A stretch of DNA of 58,691 bases, taken from positions 3,227,744 to 3,286,434 of the forward strand of contig BFEA01000012.1 of assembly GCA_003427395.1 (NCBI GenBank). Direction: 5' to 3'. Of this stretch, positions 1,632 through 57,325 are shown piece by piece (positions within the stretch are counted from its first letter, which is position 1; each line of letters starts with the position of its first letter). Made by a program: the position numbers and the translations under genes. This DNA is from Chara braunii (lineage: Eukaryota > Plantae > Charophyceae). The notes below the pieces were generated by a model. It worked only from the letters and a program-made list of their open reading frames with translations. It did not search any database and was not told where the DNA came from.

Positions 1632-2452
1632 TTAAGGACCGGATGGTATGCATAGAGGCGGCTGATCAGGTAGCCGAATAAAGGGCTTATTAAGTACACC
1701 ACTAAAGGGCTTATTAAGTACACCACTGCGAGGACAGGGATTTTTTAAACGAGACTTTACACCCACGGCAAGGTGTGGAAATAGTCCCCATGGATCATGC
1801 TGACATATTCTTCAGATTCTACAATCACTCAGAGAATACTCGGTATCCTGAATTACTAGTCTTTCGTGGACAAAAGATCGTCATGATGGTCAATATTTCA
1901 CTCACCTCCTGAAGTAATCTTGTGCTTAAAGTTTGAACTTAGCTTGCTTGAAGGAGTCGGCGAGTTCTGCAGTGTAAACCTGGATGAATGGGCATCTCAA
2001 GAATTGGCTGCAGCTTGACATAGATGTTGCTGGCTCTCTTTGCATCGTGAAGGACGATGGAGTAAGAAGGTGATGATGGCAGATTATGGTTCTGTACTTT
2101 TCTTTTCTTGGTACTTTTATAAGCTTCGTGGTATATATGCTGGTGCATGATATATTGTTTATGCCTACATTAGGTGATAGGTTTGATATGTTCCCAAAGT
2201 AAATCCCCCTTGTCAACAACCCCCCTTATCAACAACCCCCCTTATTAACAACCCCCCTCATCAACGACCCGATACTTAGGCGAAGAGAATGTTTATCTCT
2301 GCTGATTCTTGATTGTATATTTGCAGGTACTAACTTGTATGATATGATTACTTCGCTTTTTCTGTTGTTATCGCCGTCCTATGGCTGTGTGCATATGGGG
2401 GCGGGTGTGTGTGTCTGTGGTGTGAGTGGATGCATACTCACTCGCCTAACAG

Positions 2453-2829
2453 GGAAGTGGGAGCGTGGTAGGTTCGTGGGAGTGACACTGGTAGATAAGG
2501 TTTTGGCGGTGATGGGCTTTGGCAAGGTAGGCTCGGAGGTTGCTAGGCGAGCAAAGGGCCTGGGGATGCATGTCATAGCTCATGACCCCTACGCGGCCCA
2601 TGATCGGGCCAGGGCAATGGGCGTGGAACTGGTGTCGCTGGAGGAGGCGCTGGGTACTGCCGACTTCTTCTCCCTGCACATGCCTCTCACTTCGTCCACA
2701 GAAAGGATGTTCAATGATGCCGTCTTCAACAAGATGAAGGATGGTGCACGGATCATTAACGTCGCCAGAGGAGCGGTCATCGACACGCCTTCTCTTATAC
2801 GTGCTCTCGACTCTGGAAAGGTTGCACAG
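2453..2829 (+). CDS. PGDH: D-3-phosphoglycerate dehydrogenase, internal exon (NAD-binding domain)
   Basis: cag|GGAAGTGG acceptor and CAG|gtgcgt donor. Translates GKWERGRFVGVTL..LAVMGFGKVGSEVARRAKGLGMHVIAHDPY..FSLHMPLT..IINVARG..ALDSGKVAQ, typical of plant PGDH/SerA. Upstream exons lie outside the window. Confidence 0.96.
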
Positions 2830-3230
2830 GTGCGTCAACACTTATTGCTCCTTCTGCTGCTGACTCTGATATCTGATTTTTGGGGGGCTGATCAGTCTAG
2901 CCTGCCTCCCCTTTTTTTTTGGTCGATTGCAAGAATGGAAAAGGGTGAAAACGATCTCCTATTCCCGCTAAACTACCCATGAACCCACAAATTCTTTCAG
3001 CCAGTGTAGCTGGGGCAAGCCGGCAATTAGAGGGGGGCTGTGGAGGTCTCCTCGGAATATTCAACTGTCAATTCCTGACAATAATGTAAATACTAAATCG
3101 AGACAGGAACGATGAAGAAAGAAACAAGAACAGATTACAATCATGGAAACTCTTGATATCCCCGACATGCATTTATTGAAAAAAAAAAACTCATGCCGGC
3201 ACACGAAACACACCGCCGGGCCGGGCCTGT

Positions 3231-3322
3231 ATTCGGTATGTCTGTTAAAACTTAAAAGTTGAACCAAACAGACAGAAGATTAGCAAGGCCTTGTGAAGAA
3301 TGAATGACACACAAATCGGAAA
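3231..3322 (+). pseudogene. U6: Highly decayed U6 snRNA pseudocopy with A-rich tail
   Basis: ttcgg..tctgttaaaa..acagacagaagattagcaaggcc..atgacacacaaatcg, followed by an A-rich run. Confidence 0.65.
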
Positions 3323-4809
3323 AAAAACAAACAAACATCAGGGCCTATATGAACTCGTTTTTGAAAACGTATGTGGACCCTAGTCCAGGATATTCTCACA
3401 CACNNNNNNNNNNNNNNNNNNNNNNNNNNNNNNNNNNNNNNNNNNNNNNNNNNNNNNNNNNNNNNNNNNNNNNNNNNNNNNNNNNNNNNNNNNNNNNNNN
3501 NNNNNNNNNNNNNNNNNNNNNNNNNNNNNNNNNNNNNNNNNNNNNNNNNNNNNNNNNNNNNNNNNNNNNNNNNNNNNNNNNNNNNNNNNNNNNNNNNNNN
3601 NNNNNNNNNNNNNNNNNNNNNNNNNNNNNNNNNNNNNNNNNNNNNNNNNNNNNNNNNNNNNNNNNNNNNNNNNNNNNNNNNNNNNNNNNNNNNNNNNNNN
3701 NNNNNNNNNNNNNNNNNNNNNNNNNNNNNNNNNNNNNNNNNNNNNNNNNNNNNNNNNNNNNNNNNNNNNNNNNNNNNNNNNNNNNNNNNNNNNNNNNNNN
3801 NNNNNNNNNNNNNNNNNNNNNNNNNNNNNNNNNNNNNNNNNNNNNNNNNNNNNNNNNNNNNNNNNNNNNNNNNNNNNNNNNNNCCCCCTCCTCTTTTTTT
3901 CTACCCCGCCCTCTCCATGCACGCCCCGCTCCACTTGCGCCCATCCCTCTCTCTTCACCCCCTCCACACATCTCCCCTCTCTCTTCTCTCTCTCCTTCCT
4001 CTCCACGCTCCCCCCTTATCTGCCTGTATGTCATTCTCTCTGTTTCTCGAACAGACACATGATGCCCAGTCGCAAATGTGAAGTGACATCCTCCTCCCCC
4101 TTGCACTCTCCCTGACACCCATCAACACGTTCTGGTGGTGGGTTGCAGCACATGTACGCGTGCATTTGATGCAGTGGTCCTTTCTCACACCCACAATTTT
4201 CTGGCCTGTGCTATGCTGTTGGTGCTTTGATTTTTGCATGGCGTGCTTCACATTTCCGTATTTGTTGGCCAGAGAAATACAGGGCCACTCTTCCATTTTG
4301 GAAGGATTGGTTCAGATCATGAATAGAACAAATTGGAATCGTGGAAGTATTGTTGCCAATTTTGCAATATCATTCATGCAACTGAGGATGATAGTTCGTT
4401 GGACTGAAGCCCTAGATAGTCTTTAATGTTAGCACCGAACGGGGTGATTAAAAAAAGAAAAGAAAAAGAAAAAGAAAAAAGAAGAAGAAGAAGAAGAAGA
4501 AGAAGAAAGATAGTCTTTAGTACTCTTTGCTATGGGGATATTCCCTTTGTGCCAGAACCAGGGTGCTTTAGGCAGTGGGGCTCCTGCTGACATATGTGGG
4601 CTTCAGGTCATGGCTTTCATAAAGTTTCATTTGAGTCGCTGAGTGTGGCTTTGTGGAGCAGTTGGGATTCAGGCCATGGCTTTCATTTGAGTCGCTGGGT
4701 GTGGCTTTGTGGAGCAGTTGGAACGTCTAGAGTGTCGTCTGTATTTGACTGGGACCACCATCAAAAATGTTGTGGAAAGGGGTCAGAGAGTGCCAGATAA
4801 GGGGAATGC

Positions 4810-4921
4810 TACCGTCTTCACCCGAATAGAACGCCCGGTCATTAGTGCTGAACCTGTACTGAAAAAAAGTGCCCCAAATACAGCTATAATGACAGGGCGT
4901 TCGATTCGGTTGAAGACTGTA
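4810..4921. mobile_element. MITE family A (TA-ended hairpin, Tc1/mariner/pogo-like)
   Basis: TACCGTCTTCACCCGAATAGAACGCCCGGTCATTA..TAATGACAGGGCGTTCGATTCGGTTGAAGACTGTA, ~35-bp TIRs. Confidence 0.8.
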
Positions 4922-6788
4922 GTAGTGAGGGAGAGGGGTTAACGAATAGGGAAACGAGTCAAATGACAGATTGTTGTGTGAAAGGAAATGGGTTGTTTAT
5001 TTGGTGGTGGTGTTGTGGCCTGAAATCTTAATGAAGGCAGTTCAAGGCACTCAAAAGTAAAAAAAAAAAAAAAAAAAAAAGGCGCGCAAAAGTACATTCT
5101 GTGATGTGTGTTCCATGAGTGACCGTCTTATGGAAATGACTTAGGGAGGGATCTTTGCTGGACCACACACTGAAGCATGGCTTGGTCTGGACTCCATTGG
5201 CAGACTCAGGGCATACTCAGACTACCGGTAGCAGTTTTTTTTTTACTTATTTATGGACGTGATTGCGGTCAGATGCATCCCGGTCTGGCCGTAATTGCAG
5301 TCAGAGGCATTCTGGAAAGTGCTAATGTGAGTAGGCTCTCAGAGGGCTTAAGCTCTGGGCAAGACTCCCATGGACAGTGCATTTTGGACTGCATGGCTTG
5401 GTCACACTAGGGTGCTTTGGTCCCCGGCCTCGATTTTTAATTTTGATTCTTTTTGAATAAATTGGATCGCCTTTGTTTCAAAAAAAAGAAAAAAGGAAAA
5501 AAGAGGGTTCGTGCTGCCACCCCNNNNNNNNNNNNNNNNNNNNNNNNNNNNNNNNNNNNNNNNNNNNNNNNNNNNNNNNNNNNNNNNNNNNNNNNNNNNN
5601 NNNNNNNNNNNNNNNNNNNNNNNNNNNNNNNNNNNNNNNNNNNNNNNNNNNNNNNNNNNNNNNNNNNNNNNNNNNNNNNNNNNNNNNNNNNNNNNNNNNN
5701 NNNNNNNNNNNNNNNNNNNNNNNNNNNNNNNNNNNNNNNNNNNNNNNNNNNNNNNNNNNNNNNNNNNNNNNNNNNNNNNNNNNNNNNNNNNNNNNNNNNN
5801 NNNNNNNNNNNNNNNNNNNNNNNNNNNNNNNNNGGGCTTCTGGTGTCCCTGAAGATTCATACTCTTGGGTGGGTCTTGGACCTGTTTCTTGCCCAACTTG
5901 TTTTTTTTCGTAGGTTGAGGCTAATGATTTGTGAGTTAGTGCAAATTGGGATTAAGAGGATGTGGATATGTGGACACCTCCCGCTCAACCACCCACAGGT
6001 AGGGAAGCTTGCATGTCTTGATGATCTCATTCTTGTGATTGGCAGCAAAAGAGCTTTTGGTAGGTGATTTTGTGACCACACATGCACAGAGGGGAGGGAG
6101 GGAGAGCGGCTCGACAGTCTCTCTCTCTCTCTCACACACACACACTTAGAAACAATGGTCTGGTAGAGAGGGGGACCCACTGCTTGAAAAGTGACTACTA
6201 GCCTTTTTATCACTCCCCTCCCCCCCCTCCCTCACTCCCCTCTCTCTGTCTCTCTAACATACACGTATACGAATGAGAGGAAGGAGGGTGAGAGGGAGGG
6301 AGGGAGGTGCTGCTCTACTCATGGCGGCCTTTCCATTGGGAAGAAGTAGATGTGGTACTGCAAGGCTGCTGCCACGATGGCCGGGATGATGGGGCCTAAC
6401 TTTTTGAAAACAGGTTCCGCGGGCCCCACTTTCAAGTATGCTAATTTGGTAAATTGATGTTTAACACCGAATAATACCGCGAATATCTGGATAGTCTGAT
6501 TGCAAAATCAGGAGAAAAAAAAAGAGTCTTCTTACTCTTCTGAGTCTTCTGAACCTTTCACAATTTCAGGAGGTTCGCGAATGAATGTTCGCGATCTGCA
6601 GCTTCTTGCGCGATCTTCACAATTTCAGGCGCAAGAAGCTGCAGAAGTAGCTTCGAGAATGAATGTTCGCGATCTTCACTCAAAGAGAAAAGACTTGAAA
6701 GTTGAAACGCAAGAAATCAACAGGAAAGGAAAACAGTAAAAGCACTAGTGCTTGGATGCCGCACCTTGCCGAAGCAATAAATTACTGC

Positions 6789-8166: not shown

Positions 8167-8257
8167 TCCGGTCATTATAGCTCTATTTGATGCACTTTTC
8201 AGTCCAGATACGGGAGTAATTACGGTGCGGCGTGCGTTCTATTCGGGTGATTACGGT
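8167..8257. mobile_element. MITE family A, partial and degenerate
   Basis: ccggtcattatagct..cagtccagatac..cgttctattcgggtga. Confidence 0.55.
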
Positions 8258-8448: not shown

Positions 8449-11410
8449 GTAGCGTCATCATCCTCCCGCCATCACTTCCGTTTGCTGTTGGAAATGATCG
8501 TCTGCCTTGAACAAGTCATTTGCTTCAGCCCTTTCTCTCTATATGTTACTTAGCAGTATGGTTCGAGCAGAAACGGTATGCTGACTCTGACAATTTGGGC
8601 CTGGACTCTTGAAGTCAAATTTCAACATGAAACTGTGCAAGGTAAGAGACGATCGAGAATGGAAGCCATGTGTTAAGAATTGAGATGCAGTTTGACTCAG
8701 CCTTTCCCCCCGTTCCAACAATCAAATGGCTTGTAGGCCCCTCTTCAACCCCTCTTGTTAACTCTGTATGTGTCTGTCGGCAAAAGCATTGATCCGTCTT
8801 GCCTGTGCCATATTTTCCAAAACAAAGCTGTGCCGCCGCGTGGGAGCCTTTTTTTTTTTTTTTTTTTTTCCTGTCGTTATGGGCGGAAGCATATCAGTAT
8901 GGCCTGTTTCTTTCCGAAAGTCTGAGCCTGCTTCCATTTGTATCTCTTTCGAGAAAAAAGATACAATGGAATTATGGAAGCCTATTTCTTGTAGGCCCCT
9001 CTTGAACCCCCTCTTTTTCTGTGAAAAGATGCCACAAGCCGGATCTATATGAGTATTGCCTGTTTCTTTCTGAAAGTCTCTGTATGTGTTCACTCTATAT
9101 GCTCATCTTCTCTTTTTCTGTGAAAAGGCGCCTCAAGCCCTGTGCATCGTCTCTTTTTCTGTGAAAAGATGCTGGGGGCTTTGCCCATATTAGGCTTGAG
9201 CTGAAAACCGCGTCCAGCGTCCCTTTATCTGCAACCTTCAGACAAAATTCAAAGCTGGTAGGTATGGGGTAGCAGAAGAGACATTCAGGAAAGTTAGGGG
9301 TTATAGTAGGGTTTAGGGTTTAGGGGGAAAAAGAAGGGCAAGGGAAAGGGAAAGGGTAATCAATGATCATCAGTCACGTTACATTCTCTTGGGCGTCGGT
9401 AGCATAGTTTTCTTTCCTTTTTTTATGTATTAATTGACCAGTTTGTTATGTTGAAGTTGCAGACACTGGGACGCTGGACCCGGTTTCCAGCACAAGCAGT
9501 GTTGCATCCCTGCCGACCGCCGACCCCGACCGCCGACCGTATTGCAGCCGGCCAGTAGGGCCGACCAGTCGGCGGTCTGCCGACCAGTCAGAAGACAGCC
9601 ATCCACTATTTGTTGTTCAGTTTTGAGTCGGAAGTTGTACTGCGGTTGTTGGGTACAGCCCAAATGTGCCAAGAATTTGTGGGGGATGGGGGGATTGTGT
9701 TTGGGTGTATAGGGGGATATAGGGGGTATAGGGGTGGTATAGTGGGTACTGGGGGGGGGGTATGAGGGTGTTGGGGGGCGGTTTGTGGGTGTTGGGGTAT
9801 GGGGGTATTTGGGGTTGGTATGGGGGTGTTCGTGGGGTTGTTAGGGGTTCTGGACCCATCGGTCAGGAAGCATCGCTTGCTGGTGCAGATCGGACGAATT
9901 CTGCCGCGTATAGTGAGGGGGGGCCCTCCAGAGGACGGTGGCTGCACCATGCCATTTTGTGGATTTGCGTCTCCACACAAGCACAGTTCGGTTAGCATGC
10001 ACATGATGCAATCCCTGCTCCGAACACTATGAAGGGATGGATGATCACTGCCAGCCTCTGCCGTACAAATTGGACCTGTTCTCTTGCAATCACTCCCCCC
10101 ACTCCCTAAGTGCTTGCCCGATATGCCGATGTGGCTTTGCCATGCTTTGCTTGAATAACTGTGAACGTTAGCCTGCTTTCCTCCTGGCATGTCAGCAACA
10201 TGCCATGTGTTGTCGATGTTTCCAGGAAGAACATTGTTTGTCCCTACTGCGAGGACTATCGCTGATGCCATCACCCACCACATCCTCTCTGTTGGAGAGA
10301 TGGTTAATGGAAGACCCAAAATTCGGGGTGGTCCAAATACGGTGAAACTGAATACAGATATAACCTAAAGCACACACATATCGGACAAAAAAAAAAAAAA
10401 AAAAGAAGCAAAAATTCAGGCAAATATGGCAGTTTTGGTGAAAAATTCGCCGAAAATGACACCACCTATTAACCACGAGTGATGCCTATACAATTTTGGG
10501 TCTCTGTGTTCCTAGCACGTGCAGGAGCCACGTCGCCTGTGACAGATCATGTCCCTCAAGCAGCATCATTGCACTCATGTACAGCACCTGACATGTCATG
10601 TCCAAGCTGTAGACCGGGGCTGGAACAACAATGCCTATACAATTGTGGCCGGCGTGCCTCTGTGTTCCTAGCGCATATATGAGTCACGTAGCCTGTGACA
10701 TACGTCTACGCCGTGCCATTTGATGGAGCAAGTGCAACTGCGAGAATTGGATGCGGTGCTTCCACAGTCCGCACCCGACCCGGTCCTGTCCAGTCTGTAG
10801 GGGTGGCCGTTTACCGTAGGCAAACGGCAGCTCCTCCTCAACTCAAAATCTTCTGCAACCCAAATAACAACTTTTGGGGTCTGTAGGGGTGGCCTCTTGT
10901 GCCATTATAGAGTAGTCTGCTCTAGTGGTGAGTATGGAGAACCCTGTGAAGTTCGTCTTTCCTCTGTTCTGTCCTTCACCCCTCCACTTCCCTCCACTTC
11001 CCTCCTCTAACCCTTCTCCCTCCCCCGCCTCTCACTTCCTACAGAACTCCACTCCCTACTCCTTTCCCTTCCTCCCTCCTTTTGTGCGCTACTAGCAAAT
11101 GCATAGAAATGAGCATCATTAAGAGAACAGACAAAACATAAGCTGAAGATCTGATGTACAAAGAACAGGAGTGTACCTCCCCCCTTTACTCCGCCTCCTT
11201 TTATAATGTGCAAAGTGGGCCGTTAAGGCACACGTGGATGTCGGCAGCTGGCACTTAGCCGAAGTCAACATGGCCAGCCTTGTACATGAGAGGCACAGTG
11301 AAAGGGAGCCGCGGCAATAACAAATAGACGGGGTACATCGAAGAAACTTCAAGAAAGTCAAAGTAAAGAAAGTCAAGGAAGGGATATAATCATATTATAA
11401 TCATATAACG

Positions 11411-11515
11411 GTGCTTCAGGACGTCTGTTAAAATGGGAATGATAAAGAGAAAATTAGCAAATGGCCCTTGCGCAAGGATGACACACATATATCGAGGAGA
11501 AAAATGGTCCTCTTT
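11411..11515 (+). pseudogene. U6: U6 snRNA pseudocopy
   Basis: GTGCTTCAGGACGTCTGTTAAAATGGGAATGATAAAGAGAAAATTAGCAAATGGCCCTTGCGCAAGGATGACACACATATATCGAGG..AAATGGTCC; ACAGAGA box mutated. Confidence 0.88.
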
Positions 11516-11878
11516 CCTTTCTGAGAAAAGAAAGGGATATAAGTTCATATAACGGATCTATTCTGCTCCATGTTGCTTGGTATAGAGTTAAAAGTTCCGT
11601 ATGTAAAACCGTTTCATCGTCGTTGGAAAGGCTCATCTCATGTGGTATCCTTCATTGTCTGCAATGGAGGGAGAGGTGCATCGATATTGGATCTACTCAT
11701 CTGGGTGGAACAGGGGCTGTGGTGTTTGAAATTTGAAAATCCATATCAATCTGTATAGAGAACGTGACAAAAGTCACAAAACAAACACAGCAAGACCTTG
11801 CGAAGCTCGCCGTTCACGCGGACCAATGTGGCTACAGGCGGGACCGTGCATACGGTCATGCCAGCGGATATCCGAGGT

Positions 11879-12170
11879 CTGAGTGGGTGTGCAGGGTGGG
11901 TCTTATGGCTGTGACAGACTAGGTAGTTTCTCCGATTTACTGCCGTTCTCGGAAGGGGTTTGGATCAACAGCCTGCGAGGATTGCAGGGTTGGTGGGAGT
12001 ACAGTCTATCTACCACTTTTCTCTCTCTCAGAGTCTCAGGGGTATCCCTAACTCTGGGTGATGTGGTTAGTCATTCCACTTATCCATCAGTCAAATGCAT
12101 CCCTGGCAGACTGTCGGGGAATTTCAATCTCCCGACGAGTTGATGAAAGTCCGATGAAACAGTCTGGCCC
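11879..12170 (+). mobile_element. Hammerhead-bearing repeat, subfamily 2 (PGDH intron)
   Basis: Collinear similarity to the reverse complement of 40730-41195 (tgagtgggtgtg.., taactctggg.., ttatccatcagtcaaatgcatcc..cagact). Confidence 0.7.
12107..12166 (+). ncRNA. Hammerhead ribozyme copy, subfamily 2, degenerate
   Basis: CAGACUGUC-GGGG-aauuucaa-UCUC-CCGACGA-GUUGA-ugaaagu-CCGAU-GAAA-CAGUCUG; perfect stem III and GUC triplet, core U4>C. Confidence 0.7.
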
Positions 12171-12332
12171 AGTCGTGCTTTTTCTGTTGCGTTGTGTATA
12201 GCGAACATGACGACNNNNNNNNNNNNNNNNNNNNNNNNNNNNNNNNNNNNNNNNNNNNNNNNNNNNNNNNNNNNNNNNNNNNNNNNNNNNNNNNNNNNNN
12301 NNNNNNNNNNNNNNNNNNNNNNNNNNNNNNNN

Positions 12333-13080: not shown

Positions 13081-13451
13081 AAGAAGGGTTCTGACAGTGG
13101 GAGGAAACTCTCCGTCAGCACTGCAATGAGAAGGGCTTCTTGATGCAGGTTGTGATGTGGCATGGGTAGCTACTAGCTATTCGCCAGATGGTGCTTTGGA
13201 GGGTTAATGAAGGCTACCAAAGGTGGCAGATGAGCTGGGAAAACGGATGAGATCCACGACTAGGGGGCACTGGCTCAATCAGCGCAAAAAACTGTGCAGT
13301 GGACAGTGGAAAGTAACGACTGAAAAATAACTTGAAAGTTGATACTGCAATGTTTCTGCAAATGCGCAATCTTAATGAATAAAAAATAACTTGAAAGTTG
13401 ATACTGCAATGTTTCTGCAAATGCGCAATCTTAATGAATAATTGTCACTAC

Positions 13452-13580
13452 TACCATCTTCACCCGAATAAAACAACCCGGTCATTATTGCCCCGTATCT
13501 GGACAGAAAGTTGCACCAAATAGAGCTATATGCTGCTATAATGACTGGGTGGCGGGCGTTCTATTGGTGTGCAGACGGTA
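13452..13580. mobile_element. MITE family A
   Basis: taccatcttcacccgaata..gcagacggta. Confidence 0.75.
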
Positions 13581-15640: not shown

Positions 15641-15970
15641 AGGGGAAGAGAAGGAGGAAGGGGGAGGAGGAGTAGGAGGAAGAGGAAGAGAAGAATGGGG
15701 AGGTAAAGAGATAAGGAGCATGGCACATTCAATCCTTCGCACATTGGCTGTGCAAAAAATGCCAGGTCGATGTTAGGAGATTATTCTGCAAAACTTCACT
15801 GATATGTATTCTACTATTCCTGCAATTGTTTCTTTCTTTTCTTTTTTTTGTTGTTGTGACTGTCTGTTTGCAAGTCATGCTGCAAGTGCGTGTGTGCGTG
15901 TGAGTGTGTGTTGTAATGTTCGCTATACGGCGTATACGCGACTGCACAAAAAAGCATGACCCTGGAAGAC

Positions 15971-16055
15971 ATTTTCACCGAACTCTAACTGAGCCGTCAG
16001 GCGGTTGAACCCCAACAGTCTGCCCGGAGTGCAGTTGACTGATGGACAAGGACTC
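15971..16055 (-). mobile_element. Decayed subfamily-2 hammerhead-repeat fragment
   Basis: Minus strand reads ccttgtccatcagtcaactgcactccgggCAGACTGTT-GGGG-ttcaa-CCGC-CTGACGG. Confidence 0.55.
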
Positions 16056-16300: not shown

Positions 16301-16438
16301 TCGCAGTGCTTGCATGCATGCATGCATGCGTGATAATTTGGGTGTGGCTGTGACATTCTCGTCTTCGTCGGAAGCATTTTTTCAGTGTTTTACTCGTGTG
16401 TGTGTTGTCGTATTTGCTATACACTCAAAAAAAGCATG

Positions 16439-16497
<59 letters not shown>

Positions 16498-16603
16498 ATG
16501 TGTACAATTGTCCACATTTGCATGGTATTATGCTGGTGTTGTGCTTGTGCGTCTCATTTCTATGCCGTCAATGACCATTATTTTGCTCGGTGGAATGTGG
16601 CAG

Positions 16604-16894
16604 GTTAAGGATGGAAGCCCCCACCTCTCAAGGGTCGGCATGTTTTCTGTTGACGTCCTTCTGGAAGGTGGTATCCTCCTCTGCCACCAGGTTGACCAAC
16701 CAGGAATGATTGGGAGAGTGGGGTCCCTTCTAGGTGAAGCAAATGTGAACGTCTCTTTCATGAGTGTTGGTCGAACAAGTCCACGGAAGCATGCCGTTAT
16801 GGCAATAGGCGTCGATGAAGATCCATCGGAAGAGGTGCTCTCACAAATCCTCCACATTCCTGCCATTGAGGAGATGGTGTATCTCAGGGCATGA
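16604..16894 (+). CDS. PGDH: PGDH terminal exon (ACT domain)
   Basis: cag|GTT; VKDGSPHLSRVG..HQVDQPGMIGRVGSLLGEANVNVSFMSVGR..AVMAIGVDE..IEEMVYLRA*. Confidence 0.96.
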   Translation, partial: VKDGSPHLSRVGMFSVDVLLEGGILLCHQVDQPGMIGRVGSLLGEANVNVSFMSVGRTSPRKHAVMAIGVDEDPSEEVLSQILHIPAIEEMVYLRA

Positions 16895-18302
16895 AGGACC
16901 ACCAATAGTTCTACCAACTTCTGCGGCCTTTTTCCTACCGTCGCCGTTTGTACGGAGGCCGTGGACGGAACGGTGCCAAGTTTTGTCTCTAGTCCATGAT
17001 CGCTATTGATTTCTTTTGACATCAACAAGTTGCTGATGATTTTGTTCGTCTCTTGTCGCGTCGAAGGTAAGTTACGTTTTTCAACCCTTGTTGAAGGCTC
17101 TGCAGGTTGGAGGTGGAAAAGATCTGTGTCTGAAGGTAAGTTGTTTCACTGTTAAATCAGCTTAAATGTTAGTGAAAGGCTCTGAAGGTTGGGGGTGGAA
17201 AACATCTGTGTCTTAGACTCTTAGTCACTTAGTGTCTATAAAAAAAAGGGGGGTGGGATGGTGTGCTGTTGAATGGCAGGAGAACTTTGCTGCTGTAACT
17301 TTTGTGTAGTACTTTGCCGCAACGAAGCAACTTCACACGCAAGATCAATTCTTTTTTTTTTTTCCTTTTTTTTTTTTTTTGTTGTGGCCCGATGGACCAC
17401 GGGGCAGATATTAAACTGATCGGAACAGATACGTTCCCTGCTCGATCTATTTTTAGCCAAACGGCGGAGGAAGGTATGAGGGTATGACCCAAGATCAATT
17501 CTGTGTAAACGAGAGTCTTCTTCATTGGATCGGTTGGGCCCAGCGCGACCATCCATCCACCAAAAAAACTGCGCCGAGGAGGAGAGATGGTAAGAGGCAG
17601 GTGCCGAGCACGTGAGCAGTACGAATTTGCAGACACACATCTTCATTGCGTCCCTTACGCTATCGCAGGCTGGGAACGTTAGTCTGTAGGCGAGAAGTGA
17701 GTGTGCATGTGCACGCGTGCTCGGAGGTGGGTGTTGCTGTTTTTCAAGTTTGCTCGCTTGCTCGCTTGCTCGCTTGCGCTTGCGAGAACGGAAGGGAAGG
17801 GAAGGGAGTGCGTGTGTGCACGCATGCTCAGGCAGGTGAACTTCCAACGGAGCGCGTTCGTGAAATCACGCCCCCATCTGTCAACTGACTGGCAGGCAGG
17901 GTGTGGGGTTGGCAGGCGTTAAAGAAAAGGAGAATTTCAAAGGGGATATAGATTCTATTATAGAATCATCGTAGATGTTTTCAGAAAGCTCTATTCTCGT
18001 TAAAGCTAAGGAGGTGGGGGCTGAAACATCATAGATGTTTCAGTCAAAATGCTTATGTAACAATCTTGTCGTATGGCAATTGCCGCCGTAAGGAAGTAAC
18101 CAAGGAATTTGTGAGAAAGTTTGGAAAGTTGGAAACCCATCGGTGGGTGGCCAATTCTGCACCCCAGGGTCAGCAAGGTTGTCCTGTTGTAGGCTGAGAT
18201 GTTTCGCGAGAGAGTCTCACTACCGTAAGTTTCTCTACTTTATTCTTCAGATACCAATGGTATTGCTACATATGCTTTTTTTTTTTTTTTTCCCCTTTTT
18301 TG

Positions 18303-20082: not shown

Positions 20083-20494
20083 CTAGGCTACCAGAGTGGC
20101 CGGGGACCCCCGGCCGGGCCCAACAATAAAAATAATATATATATATATATATATGATGAGTCGGTGAAACTCCGACGAAACAGTTTGTCACAGCCCCTCG
20201 TTTGTTGTCCTCTTCTCCCTCTCTGCCTACGGTTTACCGGGCAGTTCTATTTGACGATATATATATATAAAAAGGGAATAAGAGAGGTTGCAATTGAAAA
20301 GTATTGCATTGTATATATATTTAATGTGGTAAAAAATTCGATGTGACCCTGAGGCAAATGTTGTTCAGTTTATTTTTCTGCATAACATAATTGTTTTCCA
20401 GTGTTTTTTTTTGGGTCGAGACCTTCTGTGGCCCTTGCACGGCTGGGCAGCCCGGGAAAACAAGGTTACCCGGGCGGTGTGGCTGGTACCCTAC
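20083..20494. mobile_element. hAT-like MITE family C with nested hammerhead repeat
   Basis: CTAGGCTACCA..TGGTACCCTAC; conserved internal gatgtgaccctgaggcaaa..ttcagtttatttttctgcataac. Confidence 0.7.
20154..20268 (+). mobile_element. 5'-truncated hammerhead-bearing repeat inserted in (TA)n inside a hAT-like MITE
   Basis: Starts at TGATGAGTCGGTGAAACTCCGACGAAAC; (TA)n on both sides. Confidence 0.75.
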
Positions 20495-24141: not shown

Positions 24142-24892
24142 TTCAGCCTCTACTGATTGATGAGTCGGTGAAACTCCGACGAAACAGTTTGCCACAGCCC
24201 CTCGTTTGTTCTACTCCTCTCCCTTCTCCCTCCCTCTCTGCCCACGCTTTACCGGGCAGCTCTGTTTGACTATATATATATATATATATGTCCTCTTCTC
24301 TCTCTCTGCCTACGGTTTACCGGGCAGTTCTATTTGTGACGATATATATAACTCTATTTGTTATTATATTCTATTTTTTATTATATATTCTATACTGTAC
24401 ATATAATATGTTCTATACTGTATATATATATTGTATATATATAATAATATTGTATATATATAATAATATAATAATATAAATATAATAATATAATAATATA
24501 ATAGAGAATATAATAGAAATATAGAAAGAGTCAATTTTATACATTTTATATTTCTATTATATTTTCATCTATTTATATTTGTATTTTGAATTTTATATAT
24601 ATATCGTCACAAATAGAACTGCCCGGTAAACCGTAGGCAGAGAGAGAGAAGAGGACAACAAACGAGGGGCTGTGTGACAAACTGTTTCGTCGGAGTTTCA
24701 CCGACTCATCAGGAGGCTGAACCCTCAACAGTCTGCAGAATCCCCTCACTGATTACACTGTAAATGATAATCTACCTTAACCAAAATCAAAGTAGACTAT
24801 CACTCACCCACACCAGTGAGTGATAGTCTACTTTGATTTTGGTTAAGGTAGATTATCATTTACAGTGTAATCAGTGAGGGGATTCTGCAGAA
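24142..24892. mobile_element. Tail-to-tail cluster of hammerhead-bearing repeats with an inverted 5' fragment
   Basis: + copy 24142-24350 (two tandem 3' modules), AT-rich spacer, - copy 24597-24806, then inverted duplicate of its 5' part at 24815-24892. Confidence 0.75.
24678..24735 (-). ncRNA. Type III hammerhead ribozyme, intact core
   Basis: Minus-strand RNA CAGACUGUU-GAGG-guucag-CCUC-CUGAUGA-GUCGG-ugaaacu-CCGAC-GAAA-CAGUUUG. 8-bp stem III, GUU cleavage triplet, 4-bp stem I, 5-bp stem II, all core nucleotides present. Predicted cut between 24727 and 24726. Confidence 0.9.
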
Positions 24893-24897
24893 CTCCC

Positions 24898-25017
24898 TAC
24901 CATCTTCACCCGAATAGATCGCCCAGTCATTATAGCTGTATTGGGCCCAATTTCCAGACCAGATGCAGCGATAAATTGCCCATAATGACTGGTAGTTTTA
25001 CTCGCGTGAAGAAGGTA
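24898..25017. mobile_element. MITE family A
   Basis: taccatcttcacccgaatag..gtgaagaaggta. Confidence 0.75.
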
Positions 25018-25525
25018 TCATCCGTTGTATTGGCTTTCATAAACTTGTAACACTCCAGCAGATATTGGCTTCCATAAACTGCGTTCGTTCGTTCCCTCCA
25101 CTGAATCATTGCCTGTCATTGCCTGTCATATGCGCCCCTGGCCTGGCATCCACGGATTCCACGCCCCTATTCCAGACACCTCGAGGATGTGTGAAGCACT
25201 CTCATTTTGCATGTCGAGGACGTCTGAGTGCTGCTGAGAAGGACATCGCCGCTGCCTCTCCACAGCAGTGCCGTTAGTTGTTTCTTTTAAAAGTTTGAAA
25301 AAGGGGAGTGGAAAAAAGTTCAAAAAAGTTCAAAAAACACTGGCTAGCGAATTACCGACGGTCCGGCGACGGATACCCTCACAAACACGAAAGGTGAGCT
25401 GGCGCTCGAGCAAGACGAAGGAAATGGCGAAGAAGAGAGGGAACAAGGGAAAACATGGCACAAAGGTTTCACGCAGCTCACTTTACCCCTCAGCCTTCTC
25501 ATGCACAATTCCCTTCACATGGCAG

Positions 25526-38879: not shown

Positions 38880-39153
38880 TATATATCGTCGAATATCGTC
38901 TATATATATCGTCAAATATCGTCTATATATCGTCACAAACAGAACTGCCTGGTAAACCGTAGGCAGAGAGAGAGAAGAGGACAACAAACGAGGGGCTGTG
39001 ACAAACTGTTTCGTCGGAGTATATCTTGTCAAACAGAGCTTCCCGGTAAACCGTAGGGGCAGAGAGGCAGCGAGGGAGAAGAGGACAACAAAACAAACGA
39101 GGGGCTGTGACAAACTGTTTGGTCGGAGTTTCACCTACCTACTCATCAAGAGG
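38880..39153 (-). mobile_element. Partial-tandem, 5'-truncated hammerhead-bearing repeats
   Basis: Two modules containing aggggctgtgacaaactgttt; TA-rich runs at both ends. Confidence 0.7.
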
Positions 39154-40162: not shown

Positions 40163-40729
40163 ATAACAAAATGACCTGTAGTGGCAGAAAAATGTTTCCC
40201 TTATCTTTCAGTTCTTCGAATGGTGTCAACAAACACCCCACCCAGACACCTCCAGACCCCCATTACCTCTCCTCTGACAGCCCCGGAGCCTTTGTTTAAT
40301 TAATAGGCACCCCAGGATATCGTTAGCGAAAGGCCCAAAACCCAGGTTATCATGAGGATCCACTCCATTTTAGCATATCCCCACCAACAAGCCTTCACAT
40401 GCGAGGCACAGGCAAACAAAGAGCGCCGTGCATGGAACAAAGGCAAAGAAAGAAAGAAACATCTAGCAGAGAAGCTGGGGGATGAAAGGGAACAAAAAAA
40501 AAAAAAAAAAAAAAAAAAGAAGGTGATCTGGTGTGTGTATGTATGTGCGTCTTGAATTTTCACCACAACAGCCCCTATCTATTCCCCACCCAGAGGAGTA
40601 GGTCCAAAATCGAAGCAGCAGCTTTTTTAATCCTATAGCAGACGATGAAGGCCCTTGAGTTGAGACAATCCAACAATGAAACAGTTTACCTGGGTGCTAT
40701 AGCAAGCAAGCAACATGGAGCATGTCTGT

Positions 40730-41195
40730 TGTCAGACTGTTTCGCCGGACTCGGACTTTCACCGACTCATCAGGAGGGCGTTGAACCACGATAGTCTGCC
40801 CAGGATGCATTTGACTGATGGATAAGGACTCGTCACATCGCCCAGAGTTAGAGAGAAGCGGTTAACAAGAGCCCTAAATTTTCAGGGCAGGGTTTTTCCA
40901 GGGTCATTATAACAAACTTCCCACACCTTTCAAGCCACAGACTTGTCACCAGTCCATAGAGTGCTTGGGGGGTGTTAACCAGGGCTTAAAAGTCGGGGTC
41001 CTTCTTAACCGCTTGTGCGGAGTTAGTGATACCCACCCTTGAGAGAGAAAAGTGGTCGCCTTTTTCTCACACCAACCTTGCAATCCTACCAGACTCTGTC
41101 CAGGTTCAAACCCCCGACAAGAACAGCGGTAAGTCTGAGAAACTAATCTGACAAATAATCACAAATTCATAAAACCCATTCTACACACCCACTCA
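40730..41195 (-). mobile_element. Hammerhead-bearing repeat, subfamily 2 (RRM-gene intron)
   Basis: Homologous to 11879-12170, with an extra internal segment. Confidence 0.7.
40733..40798 (-). ncRNA. Hammerhead ribozyme copy, subfamily 2, degenerate
   Basis: CAGACUAUC..CUGAUGA-GUCGG-ugaaagu-CCGA(guccggc)-GAAA-CAGUCUG; core intact, mismatches in stems I and III. Confidence 0.7.
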
Positions 41196-41211
41196 GCTAT
41201 GTGTGTCTGTG

Positions 41212-41929: not shown

Positions 41930-43365
41930 CATGAGCGGCAGTCAAGTGACCACATCAGCCAACTACTTGCACTGGCGATGGATTCGCAACAATCCTCGAG
42001 TCAAATCCTTCAAATCCTCTTCTCTCAGAGGCGCTGCTCCACTTACGCCATGTTTGTGCTACAAAGGAAACCACAAACCTTATCTTTAAAGCAATCACCG
42101 TCACGTAAGCATCATCTAAAGCTGGCACCGGTCGGATCAGACAGAAGCTTCCAAGGGCTCTCCATTTTTTTTATTTTTATTTTTTTTGGCTCTTCATTTC
42201 TTCTTATTCCAGAGACTAACTCCAAATTATGCATGCACACTGCACAGTGAAAAACAGGAAGCTGCGAGATGCATGACACGTTTCGGCGGTGCGCAAGAAT
42301 ACTCCGTTTGGTACAGATGCAAAAATAGCCTTTCGGAAGACCACCACAGCACATAGCGACACGTGCCATGCCTGTCACCTTGAGGCACGAACCTCTTCAC
42401 CGTTCTTCGTCATTTCATGCACGCTTATTTAAAAAAAAAAAAAAAAGATACATCATACATCATACATCATACAGGGAAAGAAAAAAAAAAAAAAAAAAAC
42501 AATCGGCACACATAGCACCAGCCGCTCGTCGACCCAATGCCCCACTAGATCAATCCAGTGCTGAGGTTGTCAAACTCCCGACTGACAACTGACGTCTTTC
42601 CCCTCCCTTCACGCTCTTCGAGCTATAATCCATTGTCTGGCGCACATGCACAAAGCAGACTGCAGCCTTCTGCAGAACAGAACACAAAAGTCTTTGTATC
42701 TCTAGATTCTCTACCCAACCTCGAGATTGTCCTCGATACCAACAAAACCGCGTCCCGTATCGTTTGGGAGAAAAGAGGAGGAAGATCATGCGGAATGGTA
42801 CTAAAAAGCCATATACTGTCAGCCCTTTAGTTACATATTCATACGAAAATATTAAAATAACGAAAGCAGCCCATCAGAAGTTCAACACGCGGTAACCGAA
42901 GTTCTGAAGACTGAAATATGTTTTTTATACTTTGTTTTTTTTTTTCATTCATACTAAAGAAAAAGCCCTATCAATTAGTCTTTTTTTTATCGGACTCGAG
43001 CCCGGTAGAGCCATGACTTGCTGACATGTCAGCCTTTTAGTTATATATTATTTGAATTTATTTATTTCTCCAACAAAGAGAATGAATATGCGTCTCGTAG
43101 CAAATTTGTACATCACGACTTTACGGCATCAACAAACTCAGGTAGCATCTAACATGCCCTTTTTGAGGCTTTGAGCATTAAAAAAAAGGATAAGATGACG
43201 ACAACTACGCATATGCTACAAAGTGCGGCGAATCAACAATCCATGCTCCGAGAACGACATAGACGACCATGGCAAGACCCGGAAGCCGCAAATATACCAG
43301 CAAAATTGAAAAAAAACACCATTATTCTTTTTTCCCTTCTTTTTTAAGTTGAGAAAAACGAGTCG

Positions 43366-43474
43366 AAATTTTGAACCACTTCTCGATTTATGCGTCTCCT
43401 CCTTGCTTTCAGAGGGCCATGCCAATCTTCTCTTTTTCTGTATCGTTCCAATTTTAACAGACGTCCCGAAGGAC
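43366..43474 (-). pseudogene. U6: U6 snRNA pseudocopy
   Basis: GTCCTTCGGGACGTCTGTTAAAATTGGAACGATACAGA(AAAAGA)GAAGATTGGCATGGCCC..GCAAGGAGGAGACGCATAAATCGAGAAGTGGTTCAAAATTT; insertion in the ACAGAGA box and AGC triad changed to GGC. Confidence 0.9.
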
Positions 43475-45550: not shown

Positions 45551-46381
45551 CTCGATCGACCACTCTGTTAGGCTCAGGGCTGGGTTCGAAGTTCGGACGC
45601 AGAACGTCAACACACTCGCAACGGACGAAGTCAGCGTAATTATCATTCCATCACACCATTTTGATGCTCCAGATCAAAGTCGACAATGGGAACGCATGCC
45701 AGGTGTTCGCCACCCAAAATAGAGAAAAAGAATCCATTTCAAAAATCGAACAAGCCAGCCATCAAGGAGAAATCAAAGACCGCAGCTAAAAACCATCCAC
45801 AGTACGCAAGGCTCTTAGACATATGCATAGACAAGGCACACAACCATTCAAATTTCAATATACCAGAAAACAGAAGAGAAAAAGAAGCACGTAGAAGCGA
45901 AAAGAATTTGGTCGCTAGACCTGTGAATTGAAAGGGATGCATATCAGAGAACTCAAATAGGGGTTCAGGTGGGAAAGAACATCGGAAAAGAAAACACACT
46001 ACACCCAGTGACTCTTCTGTACACAGGCCCTCGTCACACCTCGTAAAATACCAACATAACTACTGCTCACACTTTGAGTCGTCGGTTGTGTCATTTCATA
46101 ACTTTACAGATTACGAGAACGAAAACGGCCGCTATGGATTAGAAATACATACGCATACCATCACACATGCAAAATCTGTCAGCGGAACTTCAAAACAGGT
46201 TGTCGCAGGCACTGCCGCACAGCATGGAACATCAATCACCCATCCAACCACAATTTCGTTCTTCTGCCCAGATAGACTCTTCATCATCCCAGGCGTATAT
46301 GGACGTGTGGACAGATCCACAGATCGTCCATCATAGCCAGCGAAGTAGCGCAGGCCGCTCAAGAACACAGGAAGATAGTAC

Positions 46382-46490
46382 TACAGTCTTCACCCGAATA
46401 GAACCCCCGGTCATTATACCCATATTTGGTGCAATTTTCAGTCCAGATACAGCTATAATAACCGGGCGCTCTATTCGGGTGAAGACGGTA
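46382..46490. mobile_element. MITE family A
   Basis: tacagtcttcacccgaatag..ctattcgggtgaagacggta. Confidence 0.8.
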
Positions 46491-46621
46491 GTATCCACAT
46501 TGTCACGCAAAGATGCCATGGCACAGATGTCGAGAACACAGGGAACAAAGAAACCCATGTTTGGAATGCATTTACAGACTTAACTTTTCTTTAGACTGCC
46601 GCATACTTGCCCCCAGCGCAC

Positions 46622-48699: not shown

Positions 48700-49423
48700 C
48701 TAGATAACCGAGAAATCACAGCTATTACTACGGAACCCGCACTGTTGTCCCTCAACATACAACACCCAGGGGTTACACTCGTGCAGTTAGAACAAGCATT
48801 GTTTTCCTTCAATACTGGCCATGTCATTCGTTGAGGAGAAGACCGCAAACACTTCTCTCTTAACAGAATGTGTTCTTGAGAGGCAACCTTTCTGGCTTAT
48901 CGTCAGTCAATCGTTTCGTTTGGCAAAATGAACACCTTGGCTCCTCCTCTCTCTGGCCCTCTCATCTTCTGCTTTCTCGCCAGGGGATAGCGCTGTCTTC
49001 GTTGCAGGCCATGTATCTAGTACCCAAGACAACTCTGTCATCATAGTGTCACAACTTTCCTAATCAGTGACCACCCAACTTGAGGAAACACCCGTTTAGA
49101 TAACCTATCCGGGTCACAAGCCCGAAAGCTCACGTTCCCCCGTCCTTCATTCCCCTGCACACGGCCTAACTGGACATCGAAATCACAACCCCAAACGTTC
49201 GTGCATTCCGCCTGTCCTCCTGTCCTCCAATCCTCTCCACAAACCCTCACAAACGTCCTCTCCCAGAGCTCAAACTACAAGCAGGCACTCAGACGGACAT
49301 GTGTAATGGCTACTGGACCAAAACTGCATTCCGCTCTGTGGTGAGCGTTCCTGCAAGGAGTGTGTCATCCACAACTCTCACAGAGGACTTGTGGACTGGG
49401 CAAGACATCGACCAAACTGCGTC

Positions 49424-49531
49424 TACCTTCTTCACCCGAATAGAACGCCCGGTCATTATCGCTGCATCTGGACTGAAGCTGGGCCAAATGCAGCTATAAT
49501 GACCGGGCGTTCGATTCGGGTGAAGACGGTA
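49424..49531. mobile_element. MITE family A
   Basis: taccttcttcacccgaatag..cgattcgggtgaagacggta. Confidence 0.8.
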
Positions 49532-52500
49532 GTTAAACTGAGTTTGCTACATTTCCTCTTCCTTTGCCTGTGCCTTTCCATAATCGACCCCTCAGATTCA
49601 ATCTGGGCACTGCCTCTGCCGCACAGGAGGATATGTTGTGCGTGCCCTTCGAGGGTGTTGGTATTGGCCCCAGCCATTCTTTAGGGACCAGAAGCTCCTC
49701 AGCTATGAGGCTCTGACAGTCAGAGCAGGCCGCTGGACGTGTCTTAGCGCCAGATAGTGCTCGGAACAGGGGACGGGTACGACACAGGAGGGGACAACAC
49801 AAATGGCGGGAAGTAAGAGAGAGGGTTAGCTAGTAGTTTTTCGGACGCAAGATGCATGTCATCATTGCCATGGACAATTAGTCCATGAGGTCTTTCACAC
49901 AAGGGTGCGCTTGCAAAAGACTACATGAGAAAGTGAACGTGGACGTTTCTCACGGTTTCCTTCCCTCTCCCTCTCCCTCACTACTCGATGGTAACGAAGA
50001 TAAAACAACTCAAATCTCTTCTTTCATTTTTCTGCTTTGTTCATATGAATACAATCGCCACAACTCCCGATGCCACACACACAAAGAACTCACAGACATG
50101 GGATGCCCATTGTGGCTGGTAAGTAGATCTACTACTCGATGCTAAGTATGTCCCATGGGGAACGGCTTGCCCACTATTCTTCTTTGCTTTCATCTGTGCA
50201 TCGAGAAAGAGCACCACACGACTGGATACACAAATTAGAGGCCGCAGAAGCAGGGCCTAGGCACTCGAATTACTTCCCTGAGAGAACGAGAGAACGAGAG
50301 AACGAGAGAGCCTTCGTCTCTGCATGGCTATTCTGTCCATAGTGAAGGCAGCATCAGTGTTAGTTCACTCGACACATCAACTACGCTTCGCTGCGTTGGT
50401 TGGCTAAGGGGGAGGCTATACTTCTATCACATGGTTGGAGACTTCGAATGTACTTTGCTCATATGCTTGACTGAGAGAGGCACCGCCGCTCATTGCTCCA
50501 CTTGTGTTCCCTAATAAAGACAACGGACGACTACAGTGACATCAACGTCTGTACGTGTGTGTGCCAGGGCAAACCAGTCAGACCCTAATTTTGCCCTTCT
50601 TTTCTCATAAGGGCTGTGTATGTGCAAGTACAAACCCATCAAACCCTATTCTTTCTTTCTTTCTTTTGTCATAAGGGGATCAACGTCCGTGCGTGTGTGC
50701 CAGGGCAAACCCGTCAGACCCTAATTTTCTCCTCCTTTGCTCATAATAAGGGCTGTGTCTGTGCAAGTACAAACCAATCAAACCCTATTCTTTCTTTCTT
50801 TTGTCATAAGGGGGTAGCCCCTGGCCTTTCTGTATCCAGCAGGATCCAGTCCCTTTTTATCTGTTTATCAACAGCTACGGGTGTCTACCCTATATAGCCA
50901 CCGGAAGGTACAAAAATCCTAATATAAACAAATTATACAGCTCATGTGGTTTACAATCGACCAAACTCTGAACTTCATTTTCAGCCAATCAGGCTTTTCT
51001 ACTCACCTAGCACCCTTTCCTTTCCATCTCCATCTCCACTTCATTCCCTTTCATCTCTATCCCCACTTTGTTCCTTCTTGTTGCTGTTTGCATCTATCTT
51101 CATTCCTAGTTAGCTTACTTCGAATTTCGCGACTTTCTAGTACCCATCGGCGCCGCCTTTCAGGATTTCCTTAGGGACCAATTCACTCTGCGCAGATTGA
51201 CAGACCGCAACCCTTGCACTGTCGGTGGTGCTCCTCCTCCTCCTCTTCCACCCCTTTCCACTCGCCATCAACATGTGTTATAATCTCCGTTTCCACTTGC
51301 CCGTCCACTGCATTTCCACCCCATTTCCACGCATCTCCGTATCCACTCCGTTGCCGTTCCATCTCCATCCCATCTCCGCCTCCACGGCAGGCCCTTTCAT
51401 TTCCCCCCAGTCCGTTCCCCATTTTATTATTACCTACCTATAATGAACCTTTCCAATTCCTATGCACAACAACACATAATAGAGCAAAAAATATAAAGAA
51501 ACACAAAAGTCAAAAGAGCAACCACATGACCGTGCTATTAAAAAAAAAACAACGCAATGCAACTCAAAGAACAAAGCCAACCCTTTTCAGTTCCCCCCTC
51601 GAGCCATGAAAACAACCAGAGAACCAGCACATCTCCGTCCTTTCGCTATCCTCTCTCTCTCTCCTTTCTGTCCTCCGTGTTCTTTCTCTTCCATTCCTTT
51701 CTTTGTCCTTTCAGCCCTTTCTTTGCCCGTCCACTCCGAGTTAACCTTTCTCTGTCATTTCTGTCCTTTCTGTCCTCTGTTCTTTCTCTATCATTCCTTT
51801 CTCTGTCCTCCTTTCTCCGCCCTTCCTTCCTCTGTCCTTTCTCTGCTCTTGCTTTTTCTATCATTTCTCTGCCCTTTCTCTGTCTTTCTCTTACTATCAA
51901 TCCCGCCAAAGCATGCCACCCCAACCCGCCTCCATGACCAACCACATTGGACAGAATTGAAATCCCCTTCAAACATCCCCCCACCAGAAACCAGAACCAA
52001 TTCCAGAACGGGAGACCACATCCGTCTCCCTGCGCCCCCCCCCCCCCCCCCACCCCCCCCTCCCTCTCCAATCCTCCCCCAACCCCCAGCCACAATACAC
52101 GTCATTGACAATCAACGGCCCTCCCACATTCCCATCATCACCACAAACATTACTATTTTTTGCATTTTCTTCCGTATGATAATCATCATGATCATCACAA
52201 TCAACAATCACCACATCATCATTATCAAAGGAATCATTGTCATCGCCATCATCAATTATCAGACAGCAATCACACATACATCATGGTCAAAAAACAGTTC
52301 TCCACTCTGTTGGCACAGGACAAACTGAAGAGGCATGCCTGTCCATTAGATACGCTTCCACATACGCATCGCTACAAACAAGAGATGCGCACGCAAAAAC
52401 AGGAGATTCGCACAAGGAACTTTTCCACTCGATAATGTAAATTCAGCTTTCCTTCATGGAAAACAAGGGGGGGGGAGGGGGGGGGGGGACATACAAGCCA

Positions 52501-56994: not shown

Positions 56995-57325
56995 CCGACG
57001 AAAGTCTGTCGCAGGCCCTCGTTTGGGGGGGTCTTCTTCTCCCTCCCTCTCTGCCTGCCTCCGGTTTACCTACCGCGCAGTTCTCAATGAGAATGCAAAC
57101 ATACATATAGGCCCTAATTTTGGGGGTCTTCTTCTCCCTCCCTCTCTGCCTGCCTCCGGTATACCTACCGCGCAGTTCTGTTTGATGATATGTATAAATA
57201 CTGTATATAGTCAAACAGAGGAGCTGCCCGATAAACCGTAGTAGGCAGAGAGGGAGAAGGGAGAAGAGGACAAGAAACGAGGGGGGGCTGTGACAAATTG
57301 TCTTGGAAGGGGTTTCACCGAATAT
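56995..57325. mobile_element. Degenerate tail-to-tail copies of the hammerhead-repeat 3' module
   Basis: ccctcgtttg..ctctctgcct..cggtttacc on +, and its reverse complement at 57205-57320. Confidence 0.6.

Follow-up and report, generated by a model that had tools for sequence, protein, structure and literature searches.

An intact type III hammerhead motif in an abundant non-coding retroelement family of Chara braunii

The hammerhead locus and its surroundings

The window, which is the whole stretch of 58,691 nucleotides from Chara braunii that was analysed, carries on its minus strand an intact type III hammerhead motif within a short non-coding repeat, here called the reference copy, with further members of the same family in the window (Table 1). 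A separate family of short palindromic, MITE-like repeats, which match themselves in both orientations, adjoins the locus at 24897-25021; it is also present at 4806-4922, 46381-46491, 49423-49532, 13451-13491 and 8168-8209, and its RNA reads have little strand bias. Among the 20 open reading frames of at least 150 amino acids and the 150 longest stop-free frames of the window, Pfam matches were obtained solely for host dehydrogenase exons, and no reverse transcriptase, GIY-YIG, gag or integrase domain was identified in these frames. The exons, located about 14 kb apart at 2335-2982 (plus) and 16385-16894 (plus), belong to a D-3-phosphoglycerate-dehydrogenase-like gene with the domains 2-Hacid_dh_C (6e-41) and ACT (7e-11). 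Two copies of the second subfamily described below are situated between them, presumably in a very long intron.

Copies of small nuclear RNAs were also identified. One U6 copy (11411-11513, 57.7 bits) stands between the two arms of an imperfect direct repeat, each about 22-32 nt long (11380-11411 and 11532-11554), and is followed by a short run rich in A. It resembles a retropseudogene with duplicated target site, and a truncated tail of subfamily 2 lies a little way downstream of it. We considered the possibility that U6 and this tail are a chimera formed by template switching of the reverse transcriptase, which is ruled out since U6 has its own flanking direct repeats. A second U6 with insertions (52.8 bits), a weak U6 (28.2 bits) and a weak U2 (33.5 bits), found at 43365-43474 (minus), 3232-3338 (plus) and 17357-17477 (minus), respectively, suggest that snRNA pseudogenes are dispersed in the region. 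Assembly gaps (runs of N) start at 12215 and at 3405; because they begin where a subfamily 2 copy and the weak U6 region end, they fit a repeat and microsatellite content that breaks the assembly.

Table 1. Coordinates of the hammerhead motif and its parts, of the family copies and of the sequences that flank the reference copy.
Feature	Position	Strand	Description
Intact type III hammerhead	24679-24735 (helix III edge to 24678)	minus	Sequence, RF00008 alignment, fold
Helix III	24735-24728 with 24685-24678	minus	8 bp, open end
Helix I	24726-24723 with 24716-24713	minus	GAGG/CCUC, 4 bp, 6-nt loop
Core CUGAUGA	24712-24706	minus	Directly after helix I
Helix II	24705-24701 with 24693-24689	minus	GUCGG/CCGAC, 5 bp, 7-nt loop
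Core GAA	24688-24686	minus	Followed by A15.1, giving GAAA
Predicted self-cleavage site	24727/24726	minus	After U17 (24727), before G1.1 (24726); hammerhead rules applied to sequence
Subfamily 1, reference copy	24596-24807	minus	5'-truncated; 3' end enters (TA)n
Subfamily 1, copy A	1-400	plus	Longest subfamily 1 copy, clipped by window start; core mutated to CUCACGA
Subfamily 1, copy B	20154-20270	plus	Begins at U4/G5 of core, 16-17 nt below cut; (TA)n on both sides
Subfamily 1, copy C	24142-24288	plus	Older; begins in loop 1, 6-7 nt below cleavage site; 4-nt core insertion
Subfamily 1, copy C2	24289-24350	plus	Inverted twin of last 62 nt of reference copy; 100% complementary to 24596-24657
Subfamily 1, copies E and D	38924-39153	minus	Head-to-tail pair
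Copy E	39020-39153	minus	Start at +11; core UUGAUGA and CCAAAC
Copy D	38924-39020	minus	Start at about +30
Subfamily 1, copy G	56977-57084	plus	Decayed
Subfamily 1, copy H	57204-57321	minus	Decayed
Subfamily 2, element F	40555-41196	minus	GT/CA-type simple repeats on flanks
Subfamily 2, copy	11879-12214	plus	Same 5' start as F; runs into assembly gap
Subfamily 2, tail	11567-11735	plus	5'-truncated; upstream of copy at 11879
Subfamily 2, copy	15910-16055	minus	Decayed; 3' end abuts (GT)n-like tract 15888-15912
Inverted duplicate, copy-specific	24816-24891	plus	76 nt, 100% complementary to 24732-24807; at 5' end of reference copy
Target tract	24351-24595		245 nt, AT-rich, (TA)n-like, between the twins

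The initial annotation had described a complete type III hammerhead at 24735-24678 (minus), and we found the sequence to be exactly as claimed. The two strands of helix III are CAGACUGU/ACAGUUUG, with G-U at two of the eight base pairs, and the cleavage triplet is GUU, with U17 standing after the G-U of the triplet. The invariant core is complete, with C3 U4 G5 A6 N7 G8 A9, G12 A13 A14, the pair A15.1-U16.1 (24685/24728) and U24727 at H17. The topology is that of type III, helices I and II being capped by loops and helix III being open in the covariance-model alignment (model 1-54). The predicted position of the cut agrees with the hammerhead rules and is the one that the annotation had expected.

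The annotation had also proposed a check with Infernal against Rfam family RF00008. The minus strand matches the full length of the model (1-54) at 45.8 bits, corresponding to E-values of 7e-9 for a search space of 600 nt and 7e-7 for the whole window, and this score is 2.7 bits short of the gathering threshold of 48.5 bits. Because the hammerhead scores below the curated cut-off, a default Rfam scan showed two U6 genes only. A strict core pattern gave two matches in the window versus 0.00 expected.

In an isolated RNA of 63 nt, the three-way junction is the minimum-energy fold (-22.7 kcal/mol, z -2.25), and the hammerhead is retained in the minimum-energy fold of the 212-nt element RNA (24596-24807, minus), where it is closed by an outer clamp, GAGGGG/CCCCUC, made up of conserved upstream and downstream segments. 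The segment upstream of the hammerhead, at 24760-24807 (minus), forms its own 22-bp hairpin in the element RNA fold, distinct from the copy-specific palindrome of 76 bp. When the 76-bp hairpin is included in a 236-nt context, it ties up the first 4 nt of helix III, and the hammerhead is absent from the minimum-energy fold. Canonical as the motif is, the reference locus may therefore cleave poorly when transcribed from upstream. Rfam matches to miRNAs at 24760-24863 (mir-643 and others) were discarded as a mere reflection of the same palindrome. We are highly confident that the motif represents a true hammerhead that is carried by the family.

Two subfamilies and the anatomy of their insertions

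Copies were delimited by BLAST searches of the locus against the window and by MAFFT alignments, and all counts refer to the window. About 12 relatives of the intact motif were identified in two subfamilies, which share the hammerhead module and have unrelated flanks. Related copies were present at all positions listed previously, and five more were recovered (C2, D, G, H and the subfamily 2 tail). The description of a high-copy, dispersed family with no coding ORF attached was likewise borne out in the window, where the family is a non-coding retroelement family. In copy A, at least 260 nt of non-coding sequence precede the motif.

Of about 13 copies, 11 are defective due to core mutations (C3, U4, G5 or G12) or to the absence of the 5' half. 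An intact hammerhead is found solely in the reference copy, and the only other full core is that of element F, at 40734-40797 (minus), with a score of 29.1 bits, mismatches in the helices and a minimum-energy fold that is not a hammerhead. In the subfamily 2 copy at 11879-12214, a relic at 12107-12166 has U4 changed to C (CCGACGA). The window consensus of the copies retains CUGAUGA and GAAA. Covariation was considered as a line of support and rejected as too weak, since the changes are one-sided G-U/G-C replacements, with a single double change from A-U to G-C in a decayed copy.

The alignment of nine copies of subfamily 1 revealed a single common 3' end, leading directly into (TA)n, and 5' starts that vary (about +6, +11, +16, +30 and +72 relative to the cut), with TA-rich 5' flanks. 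The copies of subfamily 2 have a defined common 5' start that begins with TG, and their ends adjoin (CA/GT)n tracts. There is an insertion bias for microsatellites in both, with (TA)n at the two junctions in subfamily 1 and GT/CA in subfamily 2. Partial head-to-tail tandems are represented by C/C2 and E/D. The reference copy is bracketed by inverted duplicates of 62 nt and 76 nt, both of them 100% identical, the former being placed tail-to-tail with it across the AT-rich target tract. Reads from the family diverge from the reference at 24816 and then match positions 43-70 of copy A (agreement 0.9), and the 5' palindrome is therefore private to the reference locus. The locus may have arisen by one recent event, in which two cDNAs would have been primed from both strands at a single break in (TA)n, with one cDNA folding back on itself, making the reference copy a young insertion.

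This anatomy favours target-primed retroposition of the type seen in Penelope-like elements (PLEs) over an LTR retrozyme. In the whole window there is no tRNA-Met primer binding site within one mismatch, and no two same-sense hammerhead repeats are placed around a core as an LTR pair. ARAGORN identified no tRNA in the window, no tRNA, 7SL or 5S family of Rfam matched the element as a SINE head, Pol III boxes were not found on it, and the copies have no poly(A) tail. The search for longer copies linked to RT/GIY-YIG or to a Gypsy primer binding site, suggested at the outset, yielded none within the window, where the longest copy is clipped by the window edge. Because no RT or GIY-YIG domain is found in the 150 longest stop-free frames of the window, the link to the PLEs is drawn from anatomy and from the literature. 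Of the label that the annotation had given to the family, retrozyme/Penelope-like, the Penelope-like half is favoured by the fixed 3' end, the 5' truncation, the microsatellites and the tandem and inverted partial copies; the retrozyme half is not supported, given the lack of an LTR pair and primer binding site in the window.

Abundance, transcription and copy boundaries in public reads

The stretch with the reference copy is contained in 20 runs from seven studies of one organism. The family is very abundant and is transcribed: in two oligo-dT RNA-seq runs from 2026, the sampled reads that fell on this stretch with at least 88% likeness numbered 6,447 (out of 8.9 million) and 14,750 (out of 16.7 million), or 0.07-0.09% of the sampled reads. 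In both oligo-dT runs one strand exceeds the other by 4-7:1 over the tail (24605-24679); the ratio shrinks towards the ribozyme to about 1.0 in the bin that holds the cut (24725-39) and recovers to 1.2-2.2 upstream. The strand in excess is the ribozyme-sense strand if the library follows the usual convention. Past the 3' end, loose ends are often T-rich on the plus strand, which is a hint of polyadenylation soon after sense-oriented copies.

The summed contig depth, which is a rough proxy, drops between bins 24695-24709 and 24725-39 from 608k to 62k in X1 (10-fold) and from 198k to 9.7k in X6 (20-fold), and declines slowly further upstream. Among the contig loose ends listed near the ribozyme are 24726, 24722 and 24719/20, which are located 0-7 nt below the predicted cut. 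The flanks at these loose ends are heterogeneous and partly TA-rich (agreement 0.45-0.53), and the ends at 24719-24726 thus represent independent junctions. These patterns suggest that, of the copies extending as far as the ribozyme, the majority stop 0-16 nt below the predicted cut, as would be expected from reverse transcription of self-cleaved RNA. Alternatively, the coverage step could be caused by stalling of the reverse transcriptase at the ribozyme hairpins. The reads contain no pile-up of molecule ends at the cut, and in vivo cleavage is therefore not seen directly.

Among the listed variants, those that are common within the motif affect N7, H17, the loops and wobble-compatible helix positions and leave the invariant core untouched. 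We do not take this as a sign of selection on the core, since eight variant sites in 57 nt, among the variants listed, would miss the 11 invariant bases by chance in about 18% of cases. Some reads contain joints that go back from 24698 to 24594 and from 24725 to 24610, resembling the junction between copies D and E in the window. Such joints recur in the assembled contigs of two runs (for which RNA or DNA is not recorded as the kind), with filler letters at the copy joint. Their presence in contigs, and the filler between the 3' end and the truncated copy, make an origin as genomic tandems more probable than one as circle junctions. No circular-RNA junction absent from the assembled contigs was found in the reads, which come from oligo-dT libraries that are poor at catching circles.

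Probable origin of the family and proposed role of its ribozyme

The annotation had stated that the hammerheads of PLEs are usually of type I, in agreement with Cervera and de la Pena (2014; PMC4209133), whereas type III hammerheads are tied to the LTR retrozymes of plants, with isolated algal examples being mentioned (Cervera et al., 2016; PMC4918200). Its suggestion that the family is possibly undescribed is not supported, since hammerhead-bearing PLEs of Chara braunii were published in 2021. That study describes two Chlamys/PLE subclades with canonical 3' hammerheads in this alga, one of the types having "a canonical 3'-HHR" and another, which is EN-less, also having canonical hammerheads, and reports high copy numbers of Chlamys in Chara braunii (Craig et al., 2021; PMC8557442). 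The same study lists strong 5' truncation, partial tandems and adjacent inverted copies as general traits of PLEs, and an insertion bias for microsatellites as a trait of Naiad and Chlamys elements in general, common targets being (CA)n and (C)n for Chlamys and (TA)n for Naiads. It also states that the role of hammerheads in PLEs is still unclear.

The family studied here and the Chlamys/PLE-X elements of PMC8557442 share the host alga, a hammerhead near the 3' end, numerous and heavily 5'-truncated copies, the occurrence of partial tandems and of inverted copies, and insertion into microsatellites. They differ in that no RT ORF is linked to the family in the window, and in that (TA)n is the target of subfamily 1, the common targets of Chlamys being given there as (CA)n and (C)n. 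The pseudo-LTRs of PLEs and the animal non-LTR retrozymes (PMC4209133; PMC7229834), which according to a 2026 preprint are derived from such pseudo-LTRs (bioRxiv 10.64898/2026.07.22.740005), are likewise characterized by a ribozyme in the non-coding terminal repeat of a target-primed retroelement and by abundant non-autonomous derivatives. Their hammerheads are, however, of type I, and helix III is often minimal there, so that a dimer is required, whereas the motif in Chara braunii is a monomeric type III with an open helix III of 8 bp. In addition, we saw no tandem array of monomers here, and no circular RNA in the oligo-dT reads. The LTR retrozymes of plants (PMC4918200) resemble the family in having a type III hammerhead with a similar loop 2 and in being non-coding, non-autonomous elements of the green lineage, but here we observed no LTR pair, PBS or target duplication of 4 bp, and the anatomy is that of target-primed elements. 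The PLE frame fits every structural trait that we tested except for the type of hammerhead, and the type III topology remains the one feature that sets the family apart from the type I hammerheads of PLEs in PMC4209133.

Ribozymes at the ends of retroelements also occur outside these groups, HDV-like ribozymes being found at the 5' end of the RTE and L1Tc non-LTR elements. They are likewise present at the 5' end of R2, according to the R2 paper as cited in PMC5680766. The likeness to the HDV-like ribozymes is one of function: the RNA to be reverse transcribed gets its 5' end by self-cleavage, and new copies therefore begin at the cut. The fold is another one, and in the family of Chara braunii the cut near the 3' end would make the copied product a short dead-end tail.

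We hypothesize that the hammerhead, some 130 nt away from the 3' end in this non-coding retroelement family, trims the template of transposition. New copies would be made by target-primed reverse transcription at simple repeats, those of subfamily 1 at (TA)n and those of subfamily 2 at (CA/GT)n, and the family would most likely correspond to the non-coding tail, or to a non-autonomous derivative, of the hammerhead-bearing Chlamys-type PLEs of this alga. Transcripts with the whole motif would cut themselves after U24727, and the resulting 3' product, beginning at G24726, would retain the 3' end of the element, because of which it could still be copied by the reverse transcriptase. The outcome would be a flood of "tail" copies of roughly 110-130 bp that start at or just below the cut and that could never cleave again, because the 5' strand of helix III is missing from them. 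We consider this account, with a type III hammerhead in the tail of a PLE-type retroelement and a ribozyme that trims the template, to be somewhat more probable than all others combined. A more far-reaching version, in which a monomeric plant-type (type III) hammerhead processes a target-primed Penelope-like element in a streptophyte alga and the cleaved 3' fragment is mass-retroposed, is more tentative, and we regard it as rather unlikely to hold in full.

Yet another explanation is that the family is a SINE-like element moved by a LINE that targets microsatellites, the hammerhead merely trimming the 5' end as the HDV-like ribozymes do. A fixed 3' end, 5' truncation and a simple-repeat tail fit a LINE as well as a PLE, a LINE-type reverse transcriptase seems to be active in the genome, as judged from the U6 retropseudogene at 11411-11513 with its flanking direct repeats, and no PLE ORF is found in the window. 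On the other hand, a SINE would be expected to have a tRNA-, 7SL- or 5S-like head, Pol III boxes or a poly(A) tail, none of which was found on the element, and head-to-tail and inverted partial copies along with two microsatellite targets belong to the hallmarks of PLEs according to PMC8557442. Furthermore, hammerheads are tied to PLEs and retrozymes in PMC4209133 and PMC7229834, with no tie to LINEs there, and we therefore think it unlikely that a LINE is responsible.

Still less probable in our opinion is a retrozyme of the plant type, for which the copies would be LTRs or solo LTRs and the excised RNA would circularise and be copied by a Gypsy reverse transcriptase. It would agree with the type III topology and with a loop 2 of the UGAAA type, in both of which the motif matches the RF00008 consensus of plants, viroids and retrozymes, and the 5' start of the subfamily 2 copies, which begins with TG, could be read in the same way. 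However, variable 5' truncation combined with a fixed 3' end is not the behaviour of LTRs, the window contains neither a same-sense pair of hammerhead repeats flanking a core nor a tRNA-Met primer site within one mismatch, and the back-joints, which stand in contigs of unrecorded kind with filler, are probably genomic tandems. The least likely explanation, to which we give very little weight, is that the motif is decayed or due to chance and has no catalytic role, the family carrying a relic and the reference copy only looking intact. This would be in line with the score below the gathering threshold, with the defects in 11 of about 13 window copies, with the missing pile-up of read ends at the cut and with the weak covariation, mostly one-sided G-U/G-C changes and one double change in a decayed copy. 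Against it are the E-value of 7e-7 with every invariant base in place, the retention of the same module in two families with unrelated flanks, the CUGAUGA and GAAA of the window consensus and the clustering of copy boundaries at the predicted cut. We therefore favor the hypothesis of a PLE-type retroelement with a ribozyme that trims its template.

The single locus is ordinary, being one young copy of a very common repeat, and the motif and the family are real but largely expected, given that PLEs with hammerheads have already been reported from Chara braunii. The points of some interest are solely the type III topology and the boundaries of the copies at the cut site. As regards the origin of viroid-like circular RNAs, retroelements that carry hammerheads are the leading candidates, and a family whose copies mostly start at the ribozyme cut would demonstrate an action of the ribozyme, in vivo, on the template of transposition. 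It has been proposed that the retrozymes of plants descend from PLEs (PMC5680766), a proposal to which a type III motif is relevant when it occurs in a PLE-like element from an alga closely related to the land plants. If mass retroposition of the cleaved 3' fragment is true, the family would provide natural in vivo evidence of a ribozyme that cuts the template of transposition, and it would represent a living intermediate between the hammerheads of PLEs and the type III hammerheads in the retrozymes and viroid-like RNAs of land plants.
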